Shown piece after piece: positions 9,967 to 48,920 of a DNA stretch of 64,000 nucleotides. The notes beneath the pieces were generated by a model that did no database searches, was not told where the DNA came from, and worked only from the letters and a program-made list of their open reading frames with translations. Both the position numbers and the translations under genes were made by a program. Position 1 is the first letter of the stretch; the number at the start of each line of letters is the position of its first letter. The stretch is taken from the sequence record MN871451.1; one strand, written 5' to 3'.

Positions 9967-10830
9967 ATGTTTAAAGTTACGTTTGATGACCAACCGGTCC
10001 TTTATGAAAATTTAACTTTCCCGGGTGGCGAGGAACATATCGCCATTAGTCGTCATGGTCTACCGCCTCATGATATCGGTGTTGTTAAAATAGAAGGAAG
10101 TATCAAATCCTCCACCGAGGCAGTGCGTCTACTGTTACTGGTCGATGCCATTCGTCGTATTGGGAAATACACGGCGAAAACAGAACTCCATTTAGTTGTG
10201 CCTTATTTCCCGTACGCGCGACAAGACCGTGTCTGTAATGCAGGCGAATCGTTTTCACTCGGCGTTTTTGCTGAACTGTTCAACAGCCTGAAAGCAGACC
10301 GAGTGTTGATACACGATCCTCACTCTAACGTTACCCCGGCGCTGATAAAAAACCTCGTCGTCCTGGAACAGTCCAAAATTGTCTACAATTTATTGGCTAA
10401 TTGGATTCGGGAAAATAACGTCGTGTTAGTTTCACCGGACGGCGGCGCGGCGAAGAAAACTGAAGAGTTGGCAAAACTACTCGGCGGGGTGCCTATCGTT
10501 TACGCAAACAAAAAGCGCGATACTAAAACCGGCAACATTCTCGACATTACGTTATTGGACAATGACAATATCGAAGGTCGTAATTTGTTGGTTGTCGACG
10601 ACATCTGCGATGGTGGGTGGACTTTCACTGAGCTGGCGAAAAAACTCAATACCCAAAACCCGAAATCGCTCAGTCTCTTCGTGACCCATGGAATTTTTTC
10701 CAAGGGCCTGGGTGAACTCTCTATCGCTTTTGATCAGATTTTCTCAACCAACGTTTGGTGGGAAAATATCACTGACGACGGGTTACCAACCCAATCTTAT
10801 TTAACTGCTAAAGATGGACGTGTGAAATGA
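9967..10830 (+). CDS. ribose-phosphate pyrophosphokinase-like protein (candidate Adps)
   Basis: TFPGGE, PYFPYARQDR, DPHS, VSPDGGA and LVVDDICDGGWTF (PRTase loop) motifs. Confidence 0.9.
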   Translation: MFKVTFDDQPVLYENLTFPGGEEHIAISRHGLPPHDIGVVKIEGSIKSSTEAVRLLLLVDAIRRIGKYTAKTELHLVVPYFPYARQDRVCNAGESFSLGVFAELFNSLKADRVLIHDPHSNVTPALIKNLVVLEQSKIVYNLLANWIRENNVVLVSPDGGAAKKTEELAKLLGGVPIVYANKKRDTKTGNILDITLLDNDNIEGRNLLVVDDICDGGWTFTELAKKLNTQNPKSLSLFVTHGIFSKGLGELSIAFDQIFSTNVWWENITDDGLPTQSYLTAKDGRVK

Positions 10831-12608
10831 CCAACCCTTTACTGAAAGACCCAAAGTTCTATACTGAAGATCCGCTGGTTTTCCTGCTGTGCGACGCCTA
10901 CAAAACGGGGCACATCAATCAACAACCTCTGGGCACTGACAGCTTCTTTGAAAACCTGACGGCGCGTAGTCATACGTACTTCAATACGCCTCTGGACTTC
11001 GACGGTTCGGTGTTCATGGGAATGCAGCGCCTGGTTCTGCGTTGGTTGGTGGGAAGTTTCGATAACTTCTTTAAAGCGCCGTTCAACGAATCGGAGGCAG
11101 AATACCTTCAGTATATGGATGGTGTTCTGGGTAAAGGTGTGGTGAAATCCGCTCACCTGAAAGCACTTCACGAGCTGGGTTATCTCCCACTGGAAATCCG
11201 TGCGGTACCGGAAGGCTCACTCGTCCCTATTCGTGTTCCATTCCTGACGATTGAAAACACAGTGGATGGCTTCGGGTGGCTGACGGGTTATTTCGAAGAC
11301 CTCTGGAGTAACGAACTCTGGAAGCCATGTGTGCTGGCAACGAAAGCGTTGCACTTCCGTCGAGTGTTAGAGCAGTACGCTAACGAAACGGGTGCGGCAA
11401 AAGCCTTTATCGACTACCAATCTCATAACTTCGCACTGCGCGGTATGTCGGGTATGTTCGATGATGCCAACAGCTCAGTCGGTCAGCTGATCTACTTCAA
11501 AGGGAGCGATAGCTTCCCTTCGGTCTGGACAGCGAATCGCTTCTATAACCCAGAAGGCGATATGCCGATTTCTGAAATCGCCGGGAGTGTGCCCGCTACA
11601 GAGCACAGTGTAACCTGTTTGAACATCGCAGTCTATGTCGAGCAGTTACAAGCTACTCCGGGGTACAAGAATGCGACTGAAGCGGAACTGCTGTCGAAAG
11701 CGGAAGAACTTTTCCAACGTCGACTGATCACTGAAGTTTATCCGTCTGGCGTTTTCAGCTTCGTCAGCGATACTAACGACTTCTTCGATACCATCACCAC
11801 CAAAGCCATCGCTAATAAAGATGCGATTATGGCGCGTGACGGTAAACTGGTCTATCGCCCGGATAGCGGTAATCCGTATCACATCCTCTGCGGCTATACT
11901 TGGGATGGCGATAATCACCTTTCTGCTGGTATTTATCCCGACCCTCGAATTGGTGGAAAAACGCTCTACTCCGAAATAGGTCGAGAAAAGACGGAAGAGT
12001 TCCTTCGTCGTTTTTCTATTGAAAACGGATACGAGTGCTATTGTATCGACAACGTTTTCTATTCGACTGAAAGCGGTAAACCTATTTCTTTGGAAGAGAA
12101 AAAAGGGGCCGTGCAAATCCTTTTTGAAATCTTCGGCGGAACAACCAATGCTGCGGGTTACAAAGAACTGGATTCTCACGTCGGTTTGATTTACGGGGAT
12201 GCAATCACATTGACTCGCATGACTCAGATCCTTTCTCGTTTGAAAGCGAACGGGTTCTGTAGTTCCAACGTGGTCTTTGGTGTGGGCAGTTTCGAATTCC
12301 AGTATGTTACCCGTGACACCCTGGGCATCGCCATGAAGGCGACTGCTGGGAAGGTTAACAGTAAACATTACTCTATCGCGAAAAACCCGAAAACCGACGA
12401 TGGTACTAAGAAATCGGCGAAAGGTTATCTGATCGTTGCGAAGGGCGAGAACGGAAAACTCGAGCTACGTGATAACCTGACCCGTGAAGAGTATGAAGCG
12501 CTTCGCGGTAGTGAGGTTGACGCGATGCGGACTGTGTACCTGAACGGCGACGTGAAAGTACTGGAAAGTCTTCGTACTATTCGTCAACGTGCGGCGCAGT
12601 GGTTGTAA
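10827..12608 (+). CDS. nicotinamide phosphoribosyltransferase-like protein (candidate Namat)
   Basis: DAYKTGH, HNFALRG, SVPATEHSV, FVSDT, YRPDSG, IYGDAIT, FGVGS and RDTLGIAMKAT..K.PKTDDGTKKSAKG motifs; overlaps the Prs-like stop. Confidence 0.92.
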   Translation: MTNPLLKDPKFYTEDPLVFLLCDAYKTGHINQQPLGTDSFFENLTARSHTYFNTPLDFDGSVFMGMQRLVLRWLVGSFDNFFKAPFNESEAEYLQYMDGVLGKGVVKSAHLKALHELGYLPLEIRAVPEGSLVPIRVPFLTIENTVDGFGWLTGYFEDLWSNELWKPCVLATKALHFRRVLEQYANETGAAKAFIDYQSHNFALRGMSGMFDDANSSVGQLIYFKGSDSFPSVWTANRFYNPEGDMPISEIAGSVPATEHSVTCLNIAVYVEQLQATPGYKNATEAELLSKAEELFQRRLITEVYPSGVFSFVSDTNDFFDTITTKAIANKDAIMARDGKLVYRPDSGNPYHILCGYTWDGDNHLSAGIYPDPRIGGKTLYSEIGREKTEEFLRRFSIENGYECYCIDNVFYSTESGKPISLEEKKGAVQILFEIFGGTTNAAGYKELDSHVGLIYGDAITLTRMTQILSRLKANGFCSSNVVFGVGSFEFQYVTRDTLGIAMKATAGKVNSKHYSIAKNPKTDDGTKKSAKGYLIVAKGENGKLELRDNLTREEYEALRGSEVDAMRTVYLNGDVKVLESLRTIRQRAAQWL

Positions 12609-17259: not shown

Positions 17260-17373
17260 ATGGAACTCAACGAAAAAAATCGTAATATGGTAATTGAAAA
17301 AGCGAAAAAAGGAATCTCCTTCTCTGTCTGGCGAAACAAATTTGGTATCTCGGGGGTAATGTTAAGTGAATAA
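17260..17373 (+). CDS. small hypothetical protein
   Basis: ATG 17260; 37 aa; fills the gap and overlaps the next start. Confidence 0.45.
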   Translation: MELNEKNRNMVIEKAKKGISFSVWRNKFGISGVMLSE

Positions 17374-17665
17374 ACTTTTTCTTGTTCTGATACTGTTGTT
17401 CTCGCACGGGGCGTTAGCTGACACTATTACGGTGTGGGATGACCCCGATAATAACTATGCGGGGCGCTTCGAGAAGAAGTCTATGGATGATGGTTATTTA
17501 CGGATTATCGTCGATCACGCGACTGGTTGTGAGTACTTCTACGTAGAAGGGAGAAGCATTGCGCCTGTCTTAGGGGGAAGTTATGCTGCCCGTGATCCGT
17601 ATTGCCCTTCTGAGAACAAGTACACTCAGCAGACAGACAACGGCACGAAAGCGTATCGCAAATAA
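17366..17665 (+). CDS. secreted protein (DUF6440-like IIVDHATGCEY motif)
   Basis: Signal peptide MNKLFLVLILLFSHGALA. Confidence 0.7.
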   Translation: MNKLFLVLILLFSHGALADTITVWDDPDNNYAGRFEKKSMDDGYLRIIVDHATGCEYFYVEGRSIAPVLGGSYAARDPYCPSENKYTQQTDNGTKAYRK

Positions 17666-18636: not shown

Positions 18637-19164
18637 ATGAAAAGAACAAAAAATATTTCTAAGGCGAGATTCCGTAAAAGAATTATTCTGGCAGGTGGGG
18701 TGATTATCGCCAGCGCTTTCTTATCCGGGTGCGACGTCTCTGACGACACTTATCGCCCATACGGTTCGATCTCAGAATGTCAGAAGACACTCAACGACTA
18801 TTCCGCTAATTGCACCAACGCGTATAAGTCAGCAGTTGATAACGCAAAGGTAACAGGAAAACCCTATCGTACCAAAGAAGAGTGTGAGAAAGATAACGAC
18901 AACAATCGCTGTGAATACACGTCCCATGGTGGGTCGCATTTCTACCCATACCCGCATTATTATTCCTATGGCGGTACAGGGAGCTACGCACAGCCTTTCT
19001 ATCGATCACGAAATAGCGAAACCTTTCGTTCTCGTAGCGGTACAGAATTCGCGCCTACACGAACCTCTAATGGTTTCTCAGGCGTGAAAACAGTGACCCG
19101 TTCGGGATTTGGTTCGACATCTCGTTCGCATTCTTCTTTTTCCTCCCATTCTTTCGGAGGATAA
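18637..19164 (+). CDS. YgiB/DUF1190-family lipoprotein
   Basis: MKRTKNI N-terminus, LSGC lipobox, C..C spacing and TVTRSGFG...GG C-terminus match E. coli YgiB as recalled. Confidence 0.8.
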   Translation: MKRTKNISKARFRKRIILAGGVIIASAFLSGCDVSDDTYRPYGSISECQKTLNDYSANCTNAYKSAVDNAKVTGKPYRTKEECEKDNDNNRCEYTSHGGSHFYPYPHYYSYGGTGSYAQPFYRSRNSETFRSRSGTEFAPTRTSNGFSGVKTVTRSGFGSTSRSHSSFSSHSFGG

Positions 19165-24184: not shown

Positions 24185-24541
24185 ATGAAAAAGATCATTC
24201 TTATTTTAACGTTGGTTTTCCCTTTCTTCGCTAATGCAACAGCGATTATGTTCGAGGATCAAAACTCTAAATGGACGATCACTGATAACCGCGCGGTCAT
24301 CTTTGCGAACGGCAAGAAGTACATCTGCACCGATCCAGAAATCGTCAATGACCAGGTCGATAACGATGGTTTTGTTTACTCCGCCGACACTTACGTTTGC
24401 GGGGATCGTTTTTACTTCGCACTGAAAAGCTATAACAAAACTAATTTATTCCTTTTACGTATTTACGACGGTAAACGTGAAAAAGTGGTCATTGAAAAGC
24501 TGGTAAACAAAAATCAATTCCGTTCTCTCTCCAGTTCTTAA
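24185..24541 (+). CDS. secreted beta-rich protein with two Cys
   Basis: Signal peptide MKKIILILTLVFPFFANA. Confidence 0.75.
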   Translation: MKKIILILTLVFPFFANATAIMFEDQNSKWTITDNRAVIFANGKKYICTDPEIVNDQVDNDGFVYSADTYVCGDRFYFALKSYNKTNLFLLRIYDGKREKVVIEKLVNKNQFRSLSSS

Positions 24542-24554
24542 AAAGGTGCTCAAC

Positions 24555-24893
24555 ATGAAAAAGTTTTTTCTCATTTGTTCGGCAGTTTTCTTAGCCGTTT
24601 TCACTACCTTCTCTGCACAGGCGGTGACTGAAACTTTTCGTAGCGGTCATAATCGTGTAACGGTATCTGGCGACAGAGCTTTCGGTGTTTTTGGCGGGAC
24701 TAACATAGGCTGCCAGTATATGGGCCAGCAAGGTAGTCAATATAAATGGAGTTGTAACAGCGATGACTACCAGTTGGTCTTAGAAAACCATGACAACGAG
24801 CAGGTGGCGGTATTAGGCTTATTCTACAACCGTATGGGTAAATACGTTTCTACAATGGAAGTCCCGTATACCCAAATTAAAACGGTAAGATAA
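24555..24893 (+). CDS. secreted beta-rich protein with two Cys
   Basis: ATG 24555 after AAGGTG; signal peptide ending SAQA. Confidence 0.75.
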   Translation: MKKFFLICSAVFLAVFTTFSAQAVTETFRSGHNRVTVSGDRAFGVFGGTNIGCQYMGQQGSQYKWSCNSDDYQLVLENHDNEQVAVLGLFYNRMGKYVSTMEVPYTQIKTVR

Positions 24894-41403: not shown

Positions 41404-41445
41404 CAGACAATTGGAGATGAACCCATCTCCAATTTTTTTAACATC

Positions 41446-41511: not shown

Positions 41512-41931
41512 GTGCTATTAATGTTACTGACTGCGAAAACTATCGAAAACGTACAAAAAGCTATTAATAAAAGTTCTTATACCGTTAAAGAGATTAAAGT
41601 CAAAGCTATTTATACCACACCAAAAATTTCGGTGGCGCTTTACATTTTAGACGGCGAATTAGTTGCTAGTCAGCTGTATCCTTTCAAAGGGGCTAAAATG
41701 TCAAATCTCATTTTAGATGCAGCGGCCTTCTGCGACTACTATATACTAGAAGAGATTTATCGTGGTCTTGAAAAAGACGACACCGCAGAATTGATTGAGT
41801 CTTTATGGCCTTGCAACGATAAACGCAATGTCGTCGAGATCAGCTCTTTGAAAGAAAATAAAATTTCAAAGGAATCATTTAATAATCTCGCCAACAAATT
41901 CAACAACAACCATCAACGTCGCCGGAAATAA
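41512..41931 (+). CDS. hypothetical protein
   Basis: 139 aa; the start may be ATG 41521 after GGAG. Confidence 0.65.
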   Translation: MLLMLLTAKTIENVQKAINKSSYTVKEIKVKAIYTTPKISVALYILDGELVASQLYPFKGAKMSNLILDAAAFCDYYILEEIYRGLEKDDTAELIESLWPCNDKRNVVEISSLKENKISKESFNNLANKFNNNHQRRRK

Positions 41932-41942
41932 GAGAAACTAAA

Positions 41943-42314
41943 ATGAAACTACGCTTTGCTTTAATAGGGATTGTCTTCTTTGCGGCGAATGCCTCTGCTC
42001 ACTACTTCGGTCCAGTTAACCAAACTAACTCTATCGGCATGGACGGCTATTCTCAAATTGAGATGTACATCGATACGAAAGAATCCGGGGATTTTGTTTT
42101 TCGTGTCGGGAATAAGGTCATTGCAGATAAGAAAGGGATCCCCTACAAAAAATATGTTTTCGGTGGTGAAAGAGCGACCTTTCCGATGACCATCAATAAC
42201 AAATTTATCCAGCAGCACGATAACGGACAGAAATACGTCCCTATCTGCGCGATGCAGGTAATACCCAACGTGCAGTTCCAACCCGAGGTGTGCTTCAATG
42301 TCCATGTTGAATAA
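41943..42314 (+). CDS. secreted beta-sandwich-like protein, two C-terminal Cys (module gene 1)
   Basis: Signal peptide ending NASA; YVPICAMQ...PEVCFNV. Confidence 0.75.
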   Translation: MKLRFALIGIVFFAANASAHYFGPVNQTNSIGMDGYSQIEMYIDTKESGDFVFRVGNKVIADKKGIPYKKYVFGGERATFPMTINNKFIQQHDNGQKYVPICAMQVIPNVQFQPEVCFNVHVE

Positions 42315-42702
42315 AGTCTTACTCTTTGCAGTTACACTGGCTTGTTCAACAATGGCTTTTGCCGATGCGCCTTACATCATGAACAACACAGCTGAAAACC
42401 GAGGTCGCGTACAGAACGGTGATATCAGCTGTGAGGTCAGCCGACCGCAAGCAACGATTAACGTCGGGGCGTACGGAAATAACGGTATTCAGTATCGTTA
42501 TGCAGATAACGATAAAGGTGGATATGTTAGTATAAGTATCCCCTTAGGCGGTGACGATAAGATGGCCGAAAGCTGCGAGCGGTTAGCCGATCTTAGTCGT
42601 CGCCAAAAAGAATTACAGATCCGTCGTTTAGAGATGGAAATGGAACGCATGGAACAGAATCAGCAAATGGATTCTCAACGTGCGATGCGTGTCGATCCGT
42701 AA
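42298..42702 (+). CDS. secreted beta-hairpin plus coiled-coil protein (module gene 2)
   Basis: Signal peptide ending AFA; GDISC, YVSISIPLG, SCERL and RRQKELQIRRLEMEMERME. Confidence 0.75.
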   Translation: MSMLNKVLLFAVTLACSTMAFADAPYIMNNTAENRGRVQNGDISCEVSRPQATINVGAYGNNGIQYRYADNDKGGYVSISIPLGGDDKMAESCERLADLSRRQKELQIRRLEMEMERMEQNQQMDSQRAMRVDP

Positions 42703-42746
42703 ATTGTAGTAAAAAACCTTAACTCAATCTCTCTTTTGGAAAACAA

Positions 42747-43241
42747 ATGAAAAACGTAAAATTCGCTGTGGCTGCTCTGGTACTGTCTCTGTCTTCTACT
42801 GCGTTCGCTGCGCAGGAAATGGTATGGGATGCAGAATACACCCAAACTCAAATGTCATGTGGGATCGATTTTGCCAATGGTCAGCAGACCGGCGGGATCC
42901 TTCTGAAAGGCGAGCAAGGTACCGATAATCAAAAGGCGGTTAACTTCGTACTGAAAAGTAACACCGCTCGCCAGAGCTGGAAACTGACCGAAGCCAAACT
43001 GACCCAAAACACCGGGCGCTTCGCCTTCGCTGATAACCTCATGACCATCAGCGATCGTTCGCAAACTTCCGTATTCATCAACAACCAGGAATACGCGTGG
43101 TCCGCCGCTGCTCAAAATCAGCAGATCCAGGGTAACAACAAAACGCTGGCTATCGCGCCGAAAATCAATCTCGACGCACAAGAGATGCCGCTGGGCACTA
43201 CTCACATCCAGGGCAAAGTTGTCCTGACCTGCGAAAACTAA
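42747..43241 (+). CDS. secreted fimbrial-subunit-like protein (module gene 3)
   Basis: Signal peptide ending AFA; N-terminal SCGI and C-terminal PLGTTHIQGKVVLTCEN; followed by a hairpin. Confidence 0.75.
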   Translation: MKNVKFAVAALVLSLSSTAFAAQEMVWDAEYTQTQMSCGIDFANGQQTGGILLKGEQGTDNQKAVNFVLKSNTARQSWKLTEAKLTQNTGRFAFADNLMTISDRSQTSVFINNQEYAWSAAAQNQQIQGNNKTLAIAPKINLDAQEMPLGTTHIQGKVVLTCEN

Positions 43242-43308: not shown

Positions 43309-43728
43309 ATGTTTTACTCGCTGACCCTACTTTCCAAAATACTCTCTTTGTTCTCCTGCTTCGCCCTGGCCATTCTTATTATTGCGAAAATCCCGTTATT
43401 AGAGGATGCAGTAATTTACTGGGTGATCACGTTGATCACAATACGCTTACTCTGGCTGGGTTTCCAGTTCTTCTCCTTCCCTGACCTCTCAAGAATAACG
43501 CTGACGCCAGAGAACAAAAGTAAACTTCGCCAAAAAATAGAGAAGCATCTGACTTTCACTGGCGGGATGAACGTTATGCTGCGTTTAATCGTGGCTGTGG
43601 TGCTATTCATTCTGCTCTGCGTTCACCATGAGTACTTATTAGGTATTCTGTCTATCGCTACTTTCTTTGTCCGAATGTTTTTCGAGATTGAAGCGATAAT
43701 CGAAATTGAATCGCTAAAACACGTATAA
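43309..43728 (+). CDS. four-TM membrane protein
   Basis: AAGGA RBS; four hydrophobic segments. Confidence 0.7.
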   Translation: MFYSLTLLSKILSLFSCFALAILIIAKIPLLEDAVIYWVITLITIRLLWLGFQFFSFPDLSRITLTPENKSKLRQKIEKHLTFTGGMNVMLRLIVAVVLFILLCVHHEYLLGILSIATFFVRMFFEIEAIIEIESLKHV

Positions 43729-43766
43729 AAAAGAGAGGGCGTTTGCCCTCTCTTTTTTTGTTTCTT

Positions 43767-44336
43767 TTACGGCGTTTGGAACGGGTTGATCAGAAATGCA
43801 AACTGGTATTTCTCAAATCCTTCTGCTTTCAGTTTCCACCCAATGTAAACCTTAAACCGACGTTTCTTCACGTGGTCGTCACGCATGAAGTAGACCATCC
43901 AGTAATGGGACTTATAGGTGCCTTTAACATCAAACCCTTTACCCTCTAAAACAGGTTGACGGAATTTGTCTTTTGGTGCACCTAACACGCTAATAGAAAA
44001 ACCGTACAACGGGTTGCGGTATAGCCAAAAGACACGGGCGACGTAAGTTTGCGCCCAATCAGGGAGTACCTTTACCCAGATAGAGTGTTTCTCTTTCCAA
44101 CCGGAATCCCCGTCTAAACTATTGTCCGGTGTGTCGAACCATTTCAGCCATTTCGGTAGTTTCCCGTCTTTCGTCGCAAACGCCGGTAAAAACGGTGTGA
44201 TAATGACGCAAATGATCAACGCTGCGAAGTAGATCAATAAAAAACTCAACCAGTGTAAGAAGCCCAATAACGGAATAGGATGTCCCCAAAGCGTAATTTT
44301 CTTCATCGTATTCAATCCCCAAGGTAGATGTTTCAT
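43767..44336 (-). CDS. membrane-anchored conserved-type phage protein
   Basis: N-terminal TM, then WLKWFDTPDNSLDGD and WLYRNPLYGF motifs; isolated - strand gene. Confidence 0.7.
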   Translation of the reverse strand: MKHLPWGLNTMKKITLWGHPIPLLGFLHWLSFLLIYFAALIICVIITPFLPAFATKDGKLPKWLKWFDTPDNSLDGDSGWKEKHSIWVKVLPDWAQTYVARVFWLYRNPLYGFSISVLGAPKDKFRQPVLEGKGFDVKGTYKSHYWMVYFMRDDHVKKRRFKVYIGWKLKAEGFEKYQFAFLINPFQTP

Positions 44337-44375
44337 AAAAACTTCAATAAATCGAAATGCAGTTTTTTTGATGTA

Positions 44376-44390
44376 TATATTGCTAAGGTG
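44376..44390 (+). promoter_or_regulatory. putative early promoter
   Basis: TGTA-TATATTGC-TAAG-GTG, followed by a hairpin and AACTAAACC. Confidence 0.65.
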
Positions 44391-44447
44391 AAATAGGAAA
44401 GGAAAAAGTCTTTTCCAAATAACTAAACCAATAAGAGGTAAAGTAAA

Positions 44448-44606
44448 ATGAAAGAAAGTATACTTTTATTAATTGTCACGCTCATTGCGTTGCTTTGTTT
44501 CGGCGTCTCGTTACCGATGGCCATCCTTTACGGATTCGTCTCTGTGCTCGTCTGGTATATCGTTTCACCGTTCGCTCTGTTAGTCACCGTTACCTATTTA
44601 CCCTAA
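44448..44606 (+). CDS. 52-aa membrane microprotein (not in ORF track)
   Basis: GAGG RBS; MKESILLLIVTLIALLCFGVSLPMAILYGFVSVLVWYIVSPFALLVTVTYLP. Confidence 0.7.
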   Translation: MKESILLLIVTLIALLCFGVSLPMAILYGFVSVLVWYIVSPFALLVTVTYLP

Positions 44607-44621
44607 GAAGGAGAAATCATC

Positions 44622-44792
44622 ATGACTTACTTCATCGCATTAATTCTCACCCTGCTGATCTGCACCTTCTTTGAACTGACTATCATCCCAACACTTCTGG
44701 TAGCTTTCATAGCAGGGGCCGCCGGAGCGTTTTTAGAAGAGCAAACTAACAAAGCCAATTTCAACGCAACCCATTCACCGGAGGCGTTGTAA
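44622..44792 (+). CDS. 56-aa membrane microprotein (not in ORF track)
   Basis: AAGGAG RBS; MTYFIALILTLLICTFFELTIIPTLLVAFIAGAAGAFLEEQTNKANFNATHSPEAL. Confidence 0.75.
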   Translation: MTYFIALILTLLICTFFELTIIPTLLVAFIAGAAGAFLEEQTNKANFNATHSPEAL

Positions 44793-44911
44793 TGAAAACG
44801 TCTTTCGCGGTACTGGGGATTATTTCCTCGGTACTTATTCTTGACCTGGCTTTACTCCCGGCCTGCGTTTTCGCCGTCGCCGTAGGGAGTTACTTAAAAG
44901 CGGTCAAATAG
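44792..44911 (+). CDS. 39-aa membrane microprotein (not in ORF track)
   Basis: GGAGG RBS, TAATG coupling; MKTSFAVLGIISSVLILDLALLPACVFAVAVGSYLKAVK. Confidence 0.7.
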   Translation: MKTSFAVLGIISSVLILDLALLPACVFAVAVGSYLKAVK

Positions 44912-44991
44912 TAGTAAGCGCTGCCTCTCAACAGCGTGAGTAGTGCACTCTCACCCGTAGTTAAAATATTCAATTCAAAAGGTAAATTATC

Positions 44992-45279
44992 ATGGAAAAA
45001 ATCAAAGCGTTCTTCTCTTTCTCTTTCACTGAGAAAACCAAAGCAATCTTTGCTTTCATCACCGACACCCTGATCGTTGCCGCGCTGGCAATCTTCGCCG
45101 CGTTCTGCATGGCCACTGCCATGGAAGTGGCGGCCTACGCTTTTGCGGTCTTGGTTATCTTCAGCTATATTCACGATAGCTACAACAACCTCAAAACCGT
45201 CATTTCTCCTGCCACTGACGGCGAGACTGCGACTGACGCAGGCGAGACCGACGTCTCTGACGCAGCGGTAACCGCTTAA
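44992..45279 (+). CDS. two-TM membrane protein with acidic tail
   Basis: AAGGT RBS; 95 aa. Confidence 0.75.
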   Translation: MEKIKAFFSFSFTEKTKAIFAFITDTLIVAALAIFAAFCMATAMEVAAYAFAVLVIFSYIHDSYNNLKTVISPATDGETATDAGETDVSDAAVTA

Positions 45280-46666: not shown

Positions 46667-47137
46667 ATGAAAAAATTCATTGCTGCTTCACTCATCGCCC
46701 TGTCCTCTATCGCGTCCTTCAATGCCATGGCCATCGTCAATAATTGGACCGAATCTTATCAGCAGGGTACTCTGGAGTTCTACACCGAAAATAGCGACGG
46801 TTTCTCGCTCGCATTCTCTTGCCGCGATACTGGCGACCAATGGCCGGTTCAAGCGCTGTTTCTGAACGGTACTAATGGCAACTCGCTTTCCAGCGATGAT
46901 GATCGCTACGCGCTGGTTATCGAAATGGCCGGTCAGAAGTACCAGATGATCTCTCCTGCTTCTACAGTTGGGGCAAGTAACTGGCGCTTGTTCTTCGAAG
47001 GCGTTAAGAAAACCAAAGCAAAAACCGTTAAGGTTTACGTACAAGATCATCCGGAGACCTTCGTTGTTTTCTCAACCAACGGGCTCAAGAAAATCGTCGC
47101 CGAAAATAAAGGCGGTAACTGCTTCTATCTCGGCTAA
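46667..47137 (+). CDS. secreted/periplasmic protein with two Cys
   Basis: Signal peptide MKKFIAASLIALSSIASFNAMA; AAGG RBS; followed by a terminator. Confidence 0.78.
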   Translation: MKKFIAASLIALSSIASFNAMAIVNNWTESYQQGTLEFYTENSDGFSLAFSCRDTGDQWPVQALFLNGTNGNSLSSDDDRYALVIEMAGQKYQMISPASTVGASNWRLFFEGVKKTKAKTVKVYVQDHPETFVVFSTNGLKKIVAENKGGNCFYLG

Positions 47138-48476: not shown

Positions 48477-48643
48477 AAAATTTCACCGACGACGATTTCT
48501 TTGCCGCTATGAGCGAAATCGGGATTCACTTAGACAACGAACAAAAGAACCGCGTTTTAGAAGGAGAAGAAAATGAAAAAGATTACTTTGATGGCCATCG
48601 CTCTACTGTTCACTGCTACGACCGCCCAAGCTGCGCCGAATAG
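48473..48643 (+). CDS. small acidic hypothetical protein
   Basis: ATGA coupling at 48473; overlaps the next gene by about 70 nt. Confidence 0.4.
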   Translation: MKNFTDDDFFAAMSEIGIHLDNEQKNRVLEGEENEKDYFDGHRSTVHCYDRPSCAE

Positions 48644-48920
48644 CGCTTGTATCGATCGCGTCAACACTGAGGTTAAAAACGCGGTGACGTTGTTCCCTGG
48701 CGTTAACCCTAAAACCGTTCATGTCACCTTTATGCGTGCTAAGCCTTCTTCGCTTTCTGCCATGGAAGGTGAGGCGCAGACGCCAGGGTATAAAGTTTAC
48801 AGTACGGTCTCTTTCACGCAGAAAAAAGAAACCGTTCGTTGGTTGAATGAAAGCGGTGTTGTTTTTGACGGAGATGACACTTGTTCTGTACTTTACACTA
48901 ATCTGGATGTCGCGGGATGA
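48573..48920 (+). CDS. secreted/periplasmic protein with two Cys
   Basis: AAGGAG RBS; signal peptide MKKITLMAIALLFTATTAQA. Confidence 0.78.
   Translation: MKKITLMAIALLFTATTAQAAPNSACIDRVNTEVKNAVTLFPGVNPKTVHVTFMRAKPSSLSAMEGEAQTPGYKVYSTVSFTQKKETVRWLNESGVVFDGDDTCSVLYTNLDVAG

Follow-up and report, generated by a model that had tools for sequence, protein, structure and literature searches.

Chaperone-usher fimbriae are characterized by an immunoglobulin (Ig)-like pilin, a donated N-terminal strand, a PapD-like chaperone, and an usher (PMC13721041). Here these features are compared with a locus in a 64,000-nucleotide (nt) stretch of sequence record MN871451.1 (the whole stretch is called the window below), deposited as 'Serratia phage KpYy_2_45' and belonging to a jumbo Klebsiella phage. 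Within the window lie three small adjacent genes, g1, g2, and g3, that are closed by a stem-loop (Table 1). An earlier reading of the window, made from its letters alone (the sequence-only reading), described the three as a secreted module resembling a minimal, usher-less fimbrial system. The cassette is an undescribed envelope-directed module of large Klebsiella, Raoultella, and Erwinia phages, and from its parts we infer a possible function in the envelope of the infected cell. What is new is a protein with a predicted pilin fold in an undescribed three-gene, phage-only context; literature searches returned nothing that describes the cassette or pilin-like genes carried by phages.

Phages are known to export small proteins of their own to the envelope of the infected cell. 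Examples are Sp and Imm of T4, Llp of T5, and the spanins, the last of which use periplasmic coiled coils. The cassette, by contrast, always consists of three genes where these have one or two, and no lipobox or membrane anchor is conserved in it; its proteins match none of them in PHROGs, Pfam, or NCBIfam. A reading of the cassette proteins as spanins was rejected, since they have cleavable type I signal peptides, no extra hydrophobic segment detected in the mature chains, no conserved lipobox, and no PHROG spanin match. Known anti-phage defense or exclusion proteins were rejected as well (no PADLOC match; the families matched in PHROG, at E ~3e-3 or weaker, all lack an assigned function), as were a lipoprotein exclusion factor and a virion protein. 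Used singly or as alignments, g1, g2, and g3 give no meaningful sequence match in Pfam, PHROG, NCBIfam, PADLOC, or the PDB. The NCBIfam entries BhsA and YbiJ are not relatives, because the matches to them span the signal peptide only.

In all three proteins the N-terminus is typical of a type I signal peptide: a basic n-region precedes a hydrophobic core free of charged residues and a small-x-small site, and the signal is likely cleaved after about residue 19 in g1, 22 in g2, and 21 in g3. The signal peptides were called by a crude home-made heuristic together with reading of the alignments, and Sec export of the three proteins is one of the firm points of the analysis, as are the tight operon from which they are made and their joint inheritance. 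Each mature protein contains exactly two Cys residues, which are kept across the lineages examined and probably form one disulfide per protein. In the window g1 and g2 overlap by 17 nt; therefore, the two are probably translationally coupled. A close relative has the same three coding sequences, annotated as hypothetical proteins. The hairpin that ends the cassette has a folding energy of about -21 kcal/mol (z -3.65), and none of 200 shuffled sequences was equally stable. It has no clear U-run and is probably a terminator or an RNA-stabilizing element. In 9 of 10 lineages a stem-loop follows g3, no more than 45 nt from its stop codon, and phage Miami has an annotated terminator at the equivalent position. 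An Rfam search returned nothing relevant, and a k-mer search of the window's intergenic regions found no shared promoter motif. The genes, Sec signals, paired Cys residues, and closing hairpin of the sequence-only reading are all borne out, as are the motifs that it quoted: SCGI at g3 residues 37-40, a C-terminal strand ...VVLTC that lies two residues ahead of the g3 stop, and the stretch GGYVSISIPLG in g2.

About 10 of the 91 gene-like open reading frames (ORFs) in the window look secreted, and the chance of finding three such ORFs in a row is p ~0.08; thus, adjacency alone is weak evidence for a unit. The strong evidence for a unit comes from strict co-occurrence in other genomes. By tblastn, g2 and g3 are found in the same 24 phage records and in no others among 50,697; g1 is found in 21 of the 24, and in the other three (Erwinia phages, Vequintavirinae) its ORF was seen directly upstream. 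Every one of the 24 records that bears any of the genes bears all of them, in one order and tightly packed, which agrees with the statement in the sequence-only reading that other phages have similar triplets. The carriers belong to four genera (Siatvirus, Miamivirus, Eowynvirus, and Henunavirus). Further lineages come from metagenomic and IMG/VR contigs, with genomes of up to 375 kb, and the order g1-g2-g3 is present in every metagenomic or viral contig that has enough flanking sequence. Between lineages, the spacing of g1 and g2 varies from 17 nt of overlap to a gap of 10 nt, and that of g2 and g3 from 4 nt of overlap to a gap of 45 nt. The flanks are different in each case: a tRNA array in an Erwinia phage, a thymidine kinase gene in Eowyn, and an ADP-ribosyl glycohydrolase gene in contig L017.

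Sequence comparison also fits joint inheritance of the three genes. Their pairwise identities correlate over nine lineages (r 0.56-0.84), with g1 the fastest-evolving of the three and g2 at 37-52% identity between lineages. Relative to the window, a near relative has 7 synonymous and 1 nonsynonymous changes in g1, 12 and 4 in g2, and an identical g3. No paralogue of any of the three is present elsewhere in the window, and they are not paralogues of one another, as profile-profile comparison aligns their signal peptides only. Profile scans of 185,579 species genomes, limited to short peptide patterns, confirmed no bacterial relative of g3 or g2, and tblastn found no plasmid copy of g3. The co-occurrence, the fixed order, the varying flanks, and the lack of a bacterial copy in these scans together indicate that, as judged by genome comparison, the triplet is a real, selected, self-contained, and phage-specific cassette that is exchanged horizontally.

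The likeness to fimbriae lies in g3. Its AlphaFold2 model (12 sequences; mean predicted local distance difference test score, pLDDT, of 81.8) is an all-beta sandwich from residue 38 onward. When this model is compared with the PDB by Foldseek, the best four matches are chains of CfaB, the major subunit of CFA/I (top E 7.5e-4, probability 1.0), and the majority of the ten that follow are further donor-strand subunits or fibers, namely the PapG pilin domain, SafA, FimF/G, FimA, Csu, TasA, and archaeal bundling pili. Donor-strand fimbrial subunits are thus the best PDB matches of the gene that the sequence-only reading had likened to them. The template modeling (TM) scores are 0.39-0.42 when normalized by the query, whose length takes in a signal peptide and flexible N-terminus that together make up ~37 residues, and 0.47 when normalized by the target, a chain of the CfaA-CfaB complex. 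The resemblance of the model to pilins is therefore a borderline one at the level of fold, short of proof. Among predicted viral structures (BFVD), g3 matches two unnamed phage proteins at E 7e-8 and 2e-4; the accessions of the pair are A0A2I7S9Y1 and A0A482ID09.

CfaB, from the class 5 (alternate chaperone-usher) fimbria CFA/I (PDB 4y2l and 4y2o; for 4y2o_B, TM is 0.42 normalized by query and 0.47 normalized by target), resembles g3 in size and in export through Sec. However, the two share only ~10-13% identity with no sequence-profile signal, and CfaB requires the two-domain chaperone CfaA and the usher CfaC, neither kind of gene being found with g3. In addition, g3 has one N-terminal and one C-terminal Cys and is carried by lytic phages, whereas CfaB belongs to a bacterial operon. 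Classical and archaic pilins (FimA/F/G, PapA/E/H, SafA, CsuA/B) recur as fold matches at ranks 6-14 and beyond, with E values of 0.02-0.2. Their donor strands and the N-terminus of g3 share alternating hydrophobic residues, but g3 does not match the Pfam pilin families and the chaperone and usher are missing from the phage. Fibers that are built by donated strands without an usher, those of TasA (8aur, rank 5) and the archaeal bundling pili (7ueg, rank 13), are also among the fold matches. These come from other organisms, with other partners and secretion routes, and have no sequence relation to g3. They demonstrate that a polymer built by strand complementation can do without an usher, and this is the logic behind the explanation considered best below.

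Two further properties of g3 are consistent with a subunit. The mature N-terminus, residues 24-33, is conserved, with an alternation of hydrophobic, small, and hydrophobic side chains at W27, A29, and Y/I31; the alternation over 26-31 is retained even in the most distant homologue, and in the monomer model residues 24-33 stay outside the sandwich. This is what a donor strand would look like, and the segment is a candidate for one. In codon adaptation to the phage's structural genes, g3 ranks 2 of 71, and its third-position G+C content is among the highest of the window's ORFs; from codon usage it is probably the most strongly expressed of the three. Since g1 and g2 rank 31 and 35, this pattern fits one subunit with two accessory proteins. 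The same pilin-like fold and strand-like N-terminus, together with the lack of a phage chaperone or usher, would also suit a decoy that mimics a subunit and caps or jams the chaperone-usher pathways of the host, several of which are present in Klebsiella. Such a decoy is very improbable: g3 has no sequence likeness to host pilin families, the constant co-inheritance of g1 and g2 would go unexplained, and Erwinia and Klebsiella hosts would need a common target.

The rest of the fimbrial machinery is missing. No curli, pilin, chaperone, or usher family is matched by sequence by the three proteins and their relatives, and neither g3 nor its relatives reach E <= 1 against the fimbrial families of Pfam and NCBIfam. 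The sequence-only reading saw no usher gene nearby, and this holds over a wider range: Pfam finds no usher (an outer-membrane beta-barrel of ~800 residues) and no PapD-type chaperone among the window's 10 largest ORFs, which encode tail fibers or depolymerases, NAMPT, the tail sheath, and other structural proteins. Neither is annotated in the relative NC_061418.1, of which 295.0 of 296.7 kb is covered (the 1.7 kb at the end belongs to a gene for a tail protein), and a crude signal-peptide screen of its 81 ORFs of at least 350 amino acids (aa) found none that is convincingly secreted. A two-domain PapD-like chaperone is likewise absent, g1 being single-domain and no Pfam chaperone appearing among the proteins scanned. 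With chaperone, usher, and sequence membership all lacking, the cassette lies outside the chaperone-usher family. At most, it works like a donor-strand fiber system, and 'fimbrial system' is a working analogy, not a classification. Of the fimbrial comparison in the sequence-only reading, the g3 fold and the co-occurrence of the genes therefore stand, and membership of the chaperone-usher family does not. The relation to curli that it raised is dropped: g3 is modeled as a beta-sandwich, g2 is not a lipoprotein, and none of the three proteins matches a Csg family or PDB sequence.

The model of g1 (AlphaFold2, pLDDT 72.9) is an all-beta, seven-strand, Ig-like sandwich that forms one domain of ~104 residues. 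Foldseek places it among generic Ig, FnIII, and carbohydrate-binding module (CBM) domains, with a best E of 1.6e-3 and none at or below 1e-3. Its matches include glycosidase accessory domains, titin, antibody, and complement domains, a porphyran-binding module, and GbpA; the fimbrial chaperones Caf1M, DraB, and FimC appear at ranks 11, 29, and 35. One Ig-like domain of each of these chaperones superposes on g1 (TM by query 0.39-0.45). However, PapD-type chaperones have two domains and ~200 residues, and titin, antibody, complement, and glycosidase domains match equally well. Of the two proposals in the sequence-only reading, an Ig fold or a chaperone, the model favors the first: g1 is predicted to be a generic Ig-like domain and not specifically a chaperone.

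The sugar-related matches of g1 (the porphyran-binding module, GbpA, and the glycosidase accessory domains), along with sugar-binding domains among the lower-ranked matches of g3, raise the question of a glycan-directed module, in which g3, g1, or both would be sandwich domains that bind carbohydrate and target capsule or exopolysaccharide, or its export, in the infected cell. Capsule or exopolysaccharide is made in large amounts by most of the named hosts (Klebsiella, Raoultella, and Erwinia; one record is labeled Stenotrophomonas), and the phage has several depolymerase-like tail proteins. Nevertheless, such matches are typical of any Ig-like sandwich, no CBM family is matched by sequence, and g2 would have no role. 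This explanation is quite improbable.

Column-wise conservation of g2 indicates a beta-hairpin followed by a helix, in line with the amphipathic hairpin and coiled coil of the sequence-only reading. The mature N-terminus is conserved, and two strands (residues 53-59 and 76-83) with strict hydrophobic/polar alternation are linked by a Tyr-rich loop and flanked by C45 and C93. An amphipathic helix spans about residues 94-130; its sole length difference between lineages is exactly seven residues, that is, one heptad, as expected for a coiled coil. A weak match to OEP (E 0.02, in 2 of 7 members) is probably driven by this coiled coil. The possibility that g2 is a lipoprotein was rejected because the Cys in its signal peptide is not conserved across the alignments.

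The hairpin and helix of g2 bear on two other explanations. In the first, the strong form of the sequence-only reading, the cassette would make a true surface appendage: g2 would oligomerize to form a beta-barrel pore in the outer membrane, g1 would serve as a mini-chaperone, and g3 would be exported to the cell surface and polymerize there. The two strands of about nine residues, their strict alternation, the aromatic-rich loop, and a coiled coil that could drive oligomerization fit such a pore, as the pilin-like fold and high codon adaptation of g3 fit the polymer, and Caf1M, DraB, and FimC are among the fold matches of g1. Yet g2 is similar to no outer-membrane family, the weak OEP match being all that was found, and g1, half as large as PapD-type chaperones, does not match them preferentially. 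We regard a surface appendage as very unlikely. In the second, the proteins would be lysis accessories that help breach the outer membrane or its peptidoglycan link at the end of infection. The periplasmic coiled coil of g2 recalls the spanins, and one metagenomic lineage has genes for cell-wall hydrolases at a distance of 2.5-3.5 kb downstream, but no membrane anchor is present, the lipobox-like Cys of g2 is not conserved, and the neighbors are unrelated to lysis in most lineages. A part in lysis is extremely unlikely.

We prefer, as a tentative possibility, strand complementation of g3 with g2 as a base and g1 as a partner, the result being an altered envelope of the infected cell. The cassette would then be an accessory unit of large lytic phages that infect capsulated Enterobacterales. 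Three small disulfide-bonded proteins would be exported via Sec into the envelope of the infected cell, presumably to a location beyond the inner membrane. There g3, an abundant Ig-like sandwich of the donor-strand-subunit kind with a strand-like N-terminal extension, would be assembled by beta-strand complementation with further g3 or with a strand from g2 or g1. Given its beta-hairpin and coiled coil, g2 could serve as an oligomeric base or anchor, and g1, a single Ig-like domain, as a partner in assembly or as a cap. This would yield a complex or short polymer located in the envelope. By analogy with what other phage envelope proteins do, the pay-off might be a changed infected-cell envelope, for example, one in which other phages are excluded or a receptor is masked.

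Several observations weigh against this proposal, which draws on one borderline fold match together with sequence patterns. The carriers known so far are all lytic phages whose infection cycles are short, so that a fiber has no obvious use for them. No sequence signal connects g3 with any pilin family, even when PDB profile searches are included, and its TM scores to pilins are below 0.5. The g3 disulfide, C38-C162, could merely staple a closed sandwich. As noted above, g1 looks like a generic Ig-like domain. Finally, a distant g3-like gene, P0044 (23-26% identity), the only solo g3-like gene found, is present on a 2.6-kb contig without g1 or g2 upstream.

The main rival is a periplasmic hetero-complex, soluble or associated with the outer membrane, that does not polymerize and that blocks an envelope machine or receptor of the host, with g3 serving as a generic Ig-like scaffold. 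It would achieve superinfection exclusion or receptor masking, like the single-gene phage envelope proteins. Signal peptides and disulfide pairs suit periplasmic binders, the low TM scores and the generic fold of g1 would be expected, and the many invariant g3 residues that lie outside the modeled regular secondary structure fit a binding surface. Furthermore, about seven other small secreted proteins are encoded in the window, so envelope-directed accessory genes are common here. However, such a complex leaves unexplained both the enrichment of donor-strand proteins among the g3 fold matches and the conserved N-terminal extension; in addition, it has no known target, and there is no similarity to described exclusion proteins. 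We consider it somewhat unlikely.

If g3 does assemble by strand complementation, no earlier assembly module of the pilin type would be known from a lytic phage. The cassette would provide a natural example of how little machinery strand-complemented polymers need and bear on the long-standing question of which tasks strictly call for a chaperone and an usher. In its most far-reaching form, this proposal would mean a virus-encoded, chaperone-less and usher-less donor-strand system in which three proteins, a pilin-fold subunit, an oligomer with hairpin and coiled coil, and a lone Ig domain, suffice for a fiber or lattice in or on the envelope of an infected Gram-negative cell. That form is rather improbable; if true, such a three-protein system would be a minimal pilus-like machine without a bacterial counterpart. 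The sober reading also has consequences. The cassette is conserved, horizontally exchanged, and envelope-directed, belongs to no annotated family, and lacks a sequence homologue among the bacterial genomes scanned. It points to an unexplored route for remodeling of the infected cell by large phages of Klebsiella and Erwinia, a group with candidates for therapy and biocontrol.

Table 1. Positions of the cassette and of the NAD salvage genes (window numbering unless another record is named)
Feature	Position	Strand	Description
g1	41943-42314	+	123-aa precursor, ~104-aa mature; predicted Ig-like sandwich, C102/C117
g2	42298-42702	+	134-aa precursor, ~112-aa mature; two predicted strands, C45/C93, helix
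g3	42747-43241	+	164-aa precursor, ~143-aa mature; predicted pilin-like Ig fold, C38/C162
Stem-loop	43251-43275	+	11-bp stem, 3-nt loop; ends the cassette
NAD salvage genes	10827-12608; NC_061418.1 37228-39273, 291032-293673		

The window is 100% identical to MN871451 over a 2.3-kb query and shares 98-99% identity with Klebsiella phage KpLz-2_45 (genus Siatvirus). The genome of KpLz-2_45 encodes a PhuZ tubulin and split RNA polymerase beta subunits, features that mark a phiKZ-like phage; thus, from this relative, the window phage is a phiKZ-like jumbo Klebsiella phage. The host labels of some records conflict. Several 'Serratia phage' records of the MN871447-MN871453 group give Klebsiella pneumoniae as host, and 'Stenotrophomonas phage BUCTxx100' has the same query identities as Klebsiella phages YC1 and KPN8. 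Consequently, the host labels of MN871447-MN871453 and OR529409.1 should be read with care. The phage also carries an NAD salvage set, which consists of a NAMPT-like phosphoribosyltransferase, a ribose-phosphate pyrophosphokinase, a NadR-like adenylyltransferase, and a PnuC-like transporter.

The surroundings of the cassette and of its relatives differ. Upstream of g1 in the window is a 139-aa non-secreted ORF, g0 (41512-41931), whose end lies 11 nt before g1 and which may share a transcript with g1. A terminator-like hairpin that has a T-run is present upstream of g0, at 41409-41434. This ORF is kept in FBKp24-type relatives and was not found beside the cassette in the lineages checked (L002/L003, L005, L011, and L015-L017). 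In the 147-kb Erwinia phage pEp_SNUABM_01 (Vequintavirinae), the cassette lies within a long array of tRNA genes (L014 4281-5504), with tRNA-Arg immediately upstream and tRNA-Cys 29 nt downstream, a site that looks like an insertion into a hot spot for accessory DNA. Upstream of the solo gene P0044, ~1 kb (L009 575-1588) holds no ORF, tRNA, or remnant of g1 or g2; it may represent a structured RNA or else a region in decay. In the window, the cassette is followed directly, at 43309-45279, by a series of small predicted membrane proteins, starting with an ORF of 139 aa (43309-43728) that is followed by ORFs of 52, 56, 39, and 95 aa. A strong terminator-like hairpin is present at 43727-43758, and a DUF7338 protein is encoded at 43767-44336 on the strand opposite to the cassette.

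More small ORFs with Sec signals, most with two Cys residues in the mature protein, are scattered through the window (17366-17665, 18637-19164, 24185-24541, 24546-24893, 46667-47137, and 48573-48920), and many of the phage's proteins seem destined for the host envelope. The ORF at 17366-17665 has a weak DUF6440 match, and that at 18637-19164 has a lipobox-like site and a DUF1190 match. The ORFs at 24185-24541 and 24546-24893 form a neighboring pair, the first of which has the highest codon adaptation in the window.

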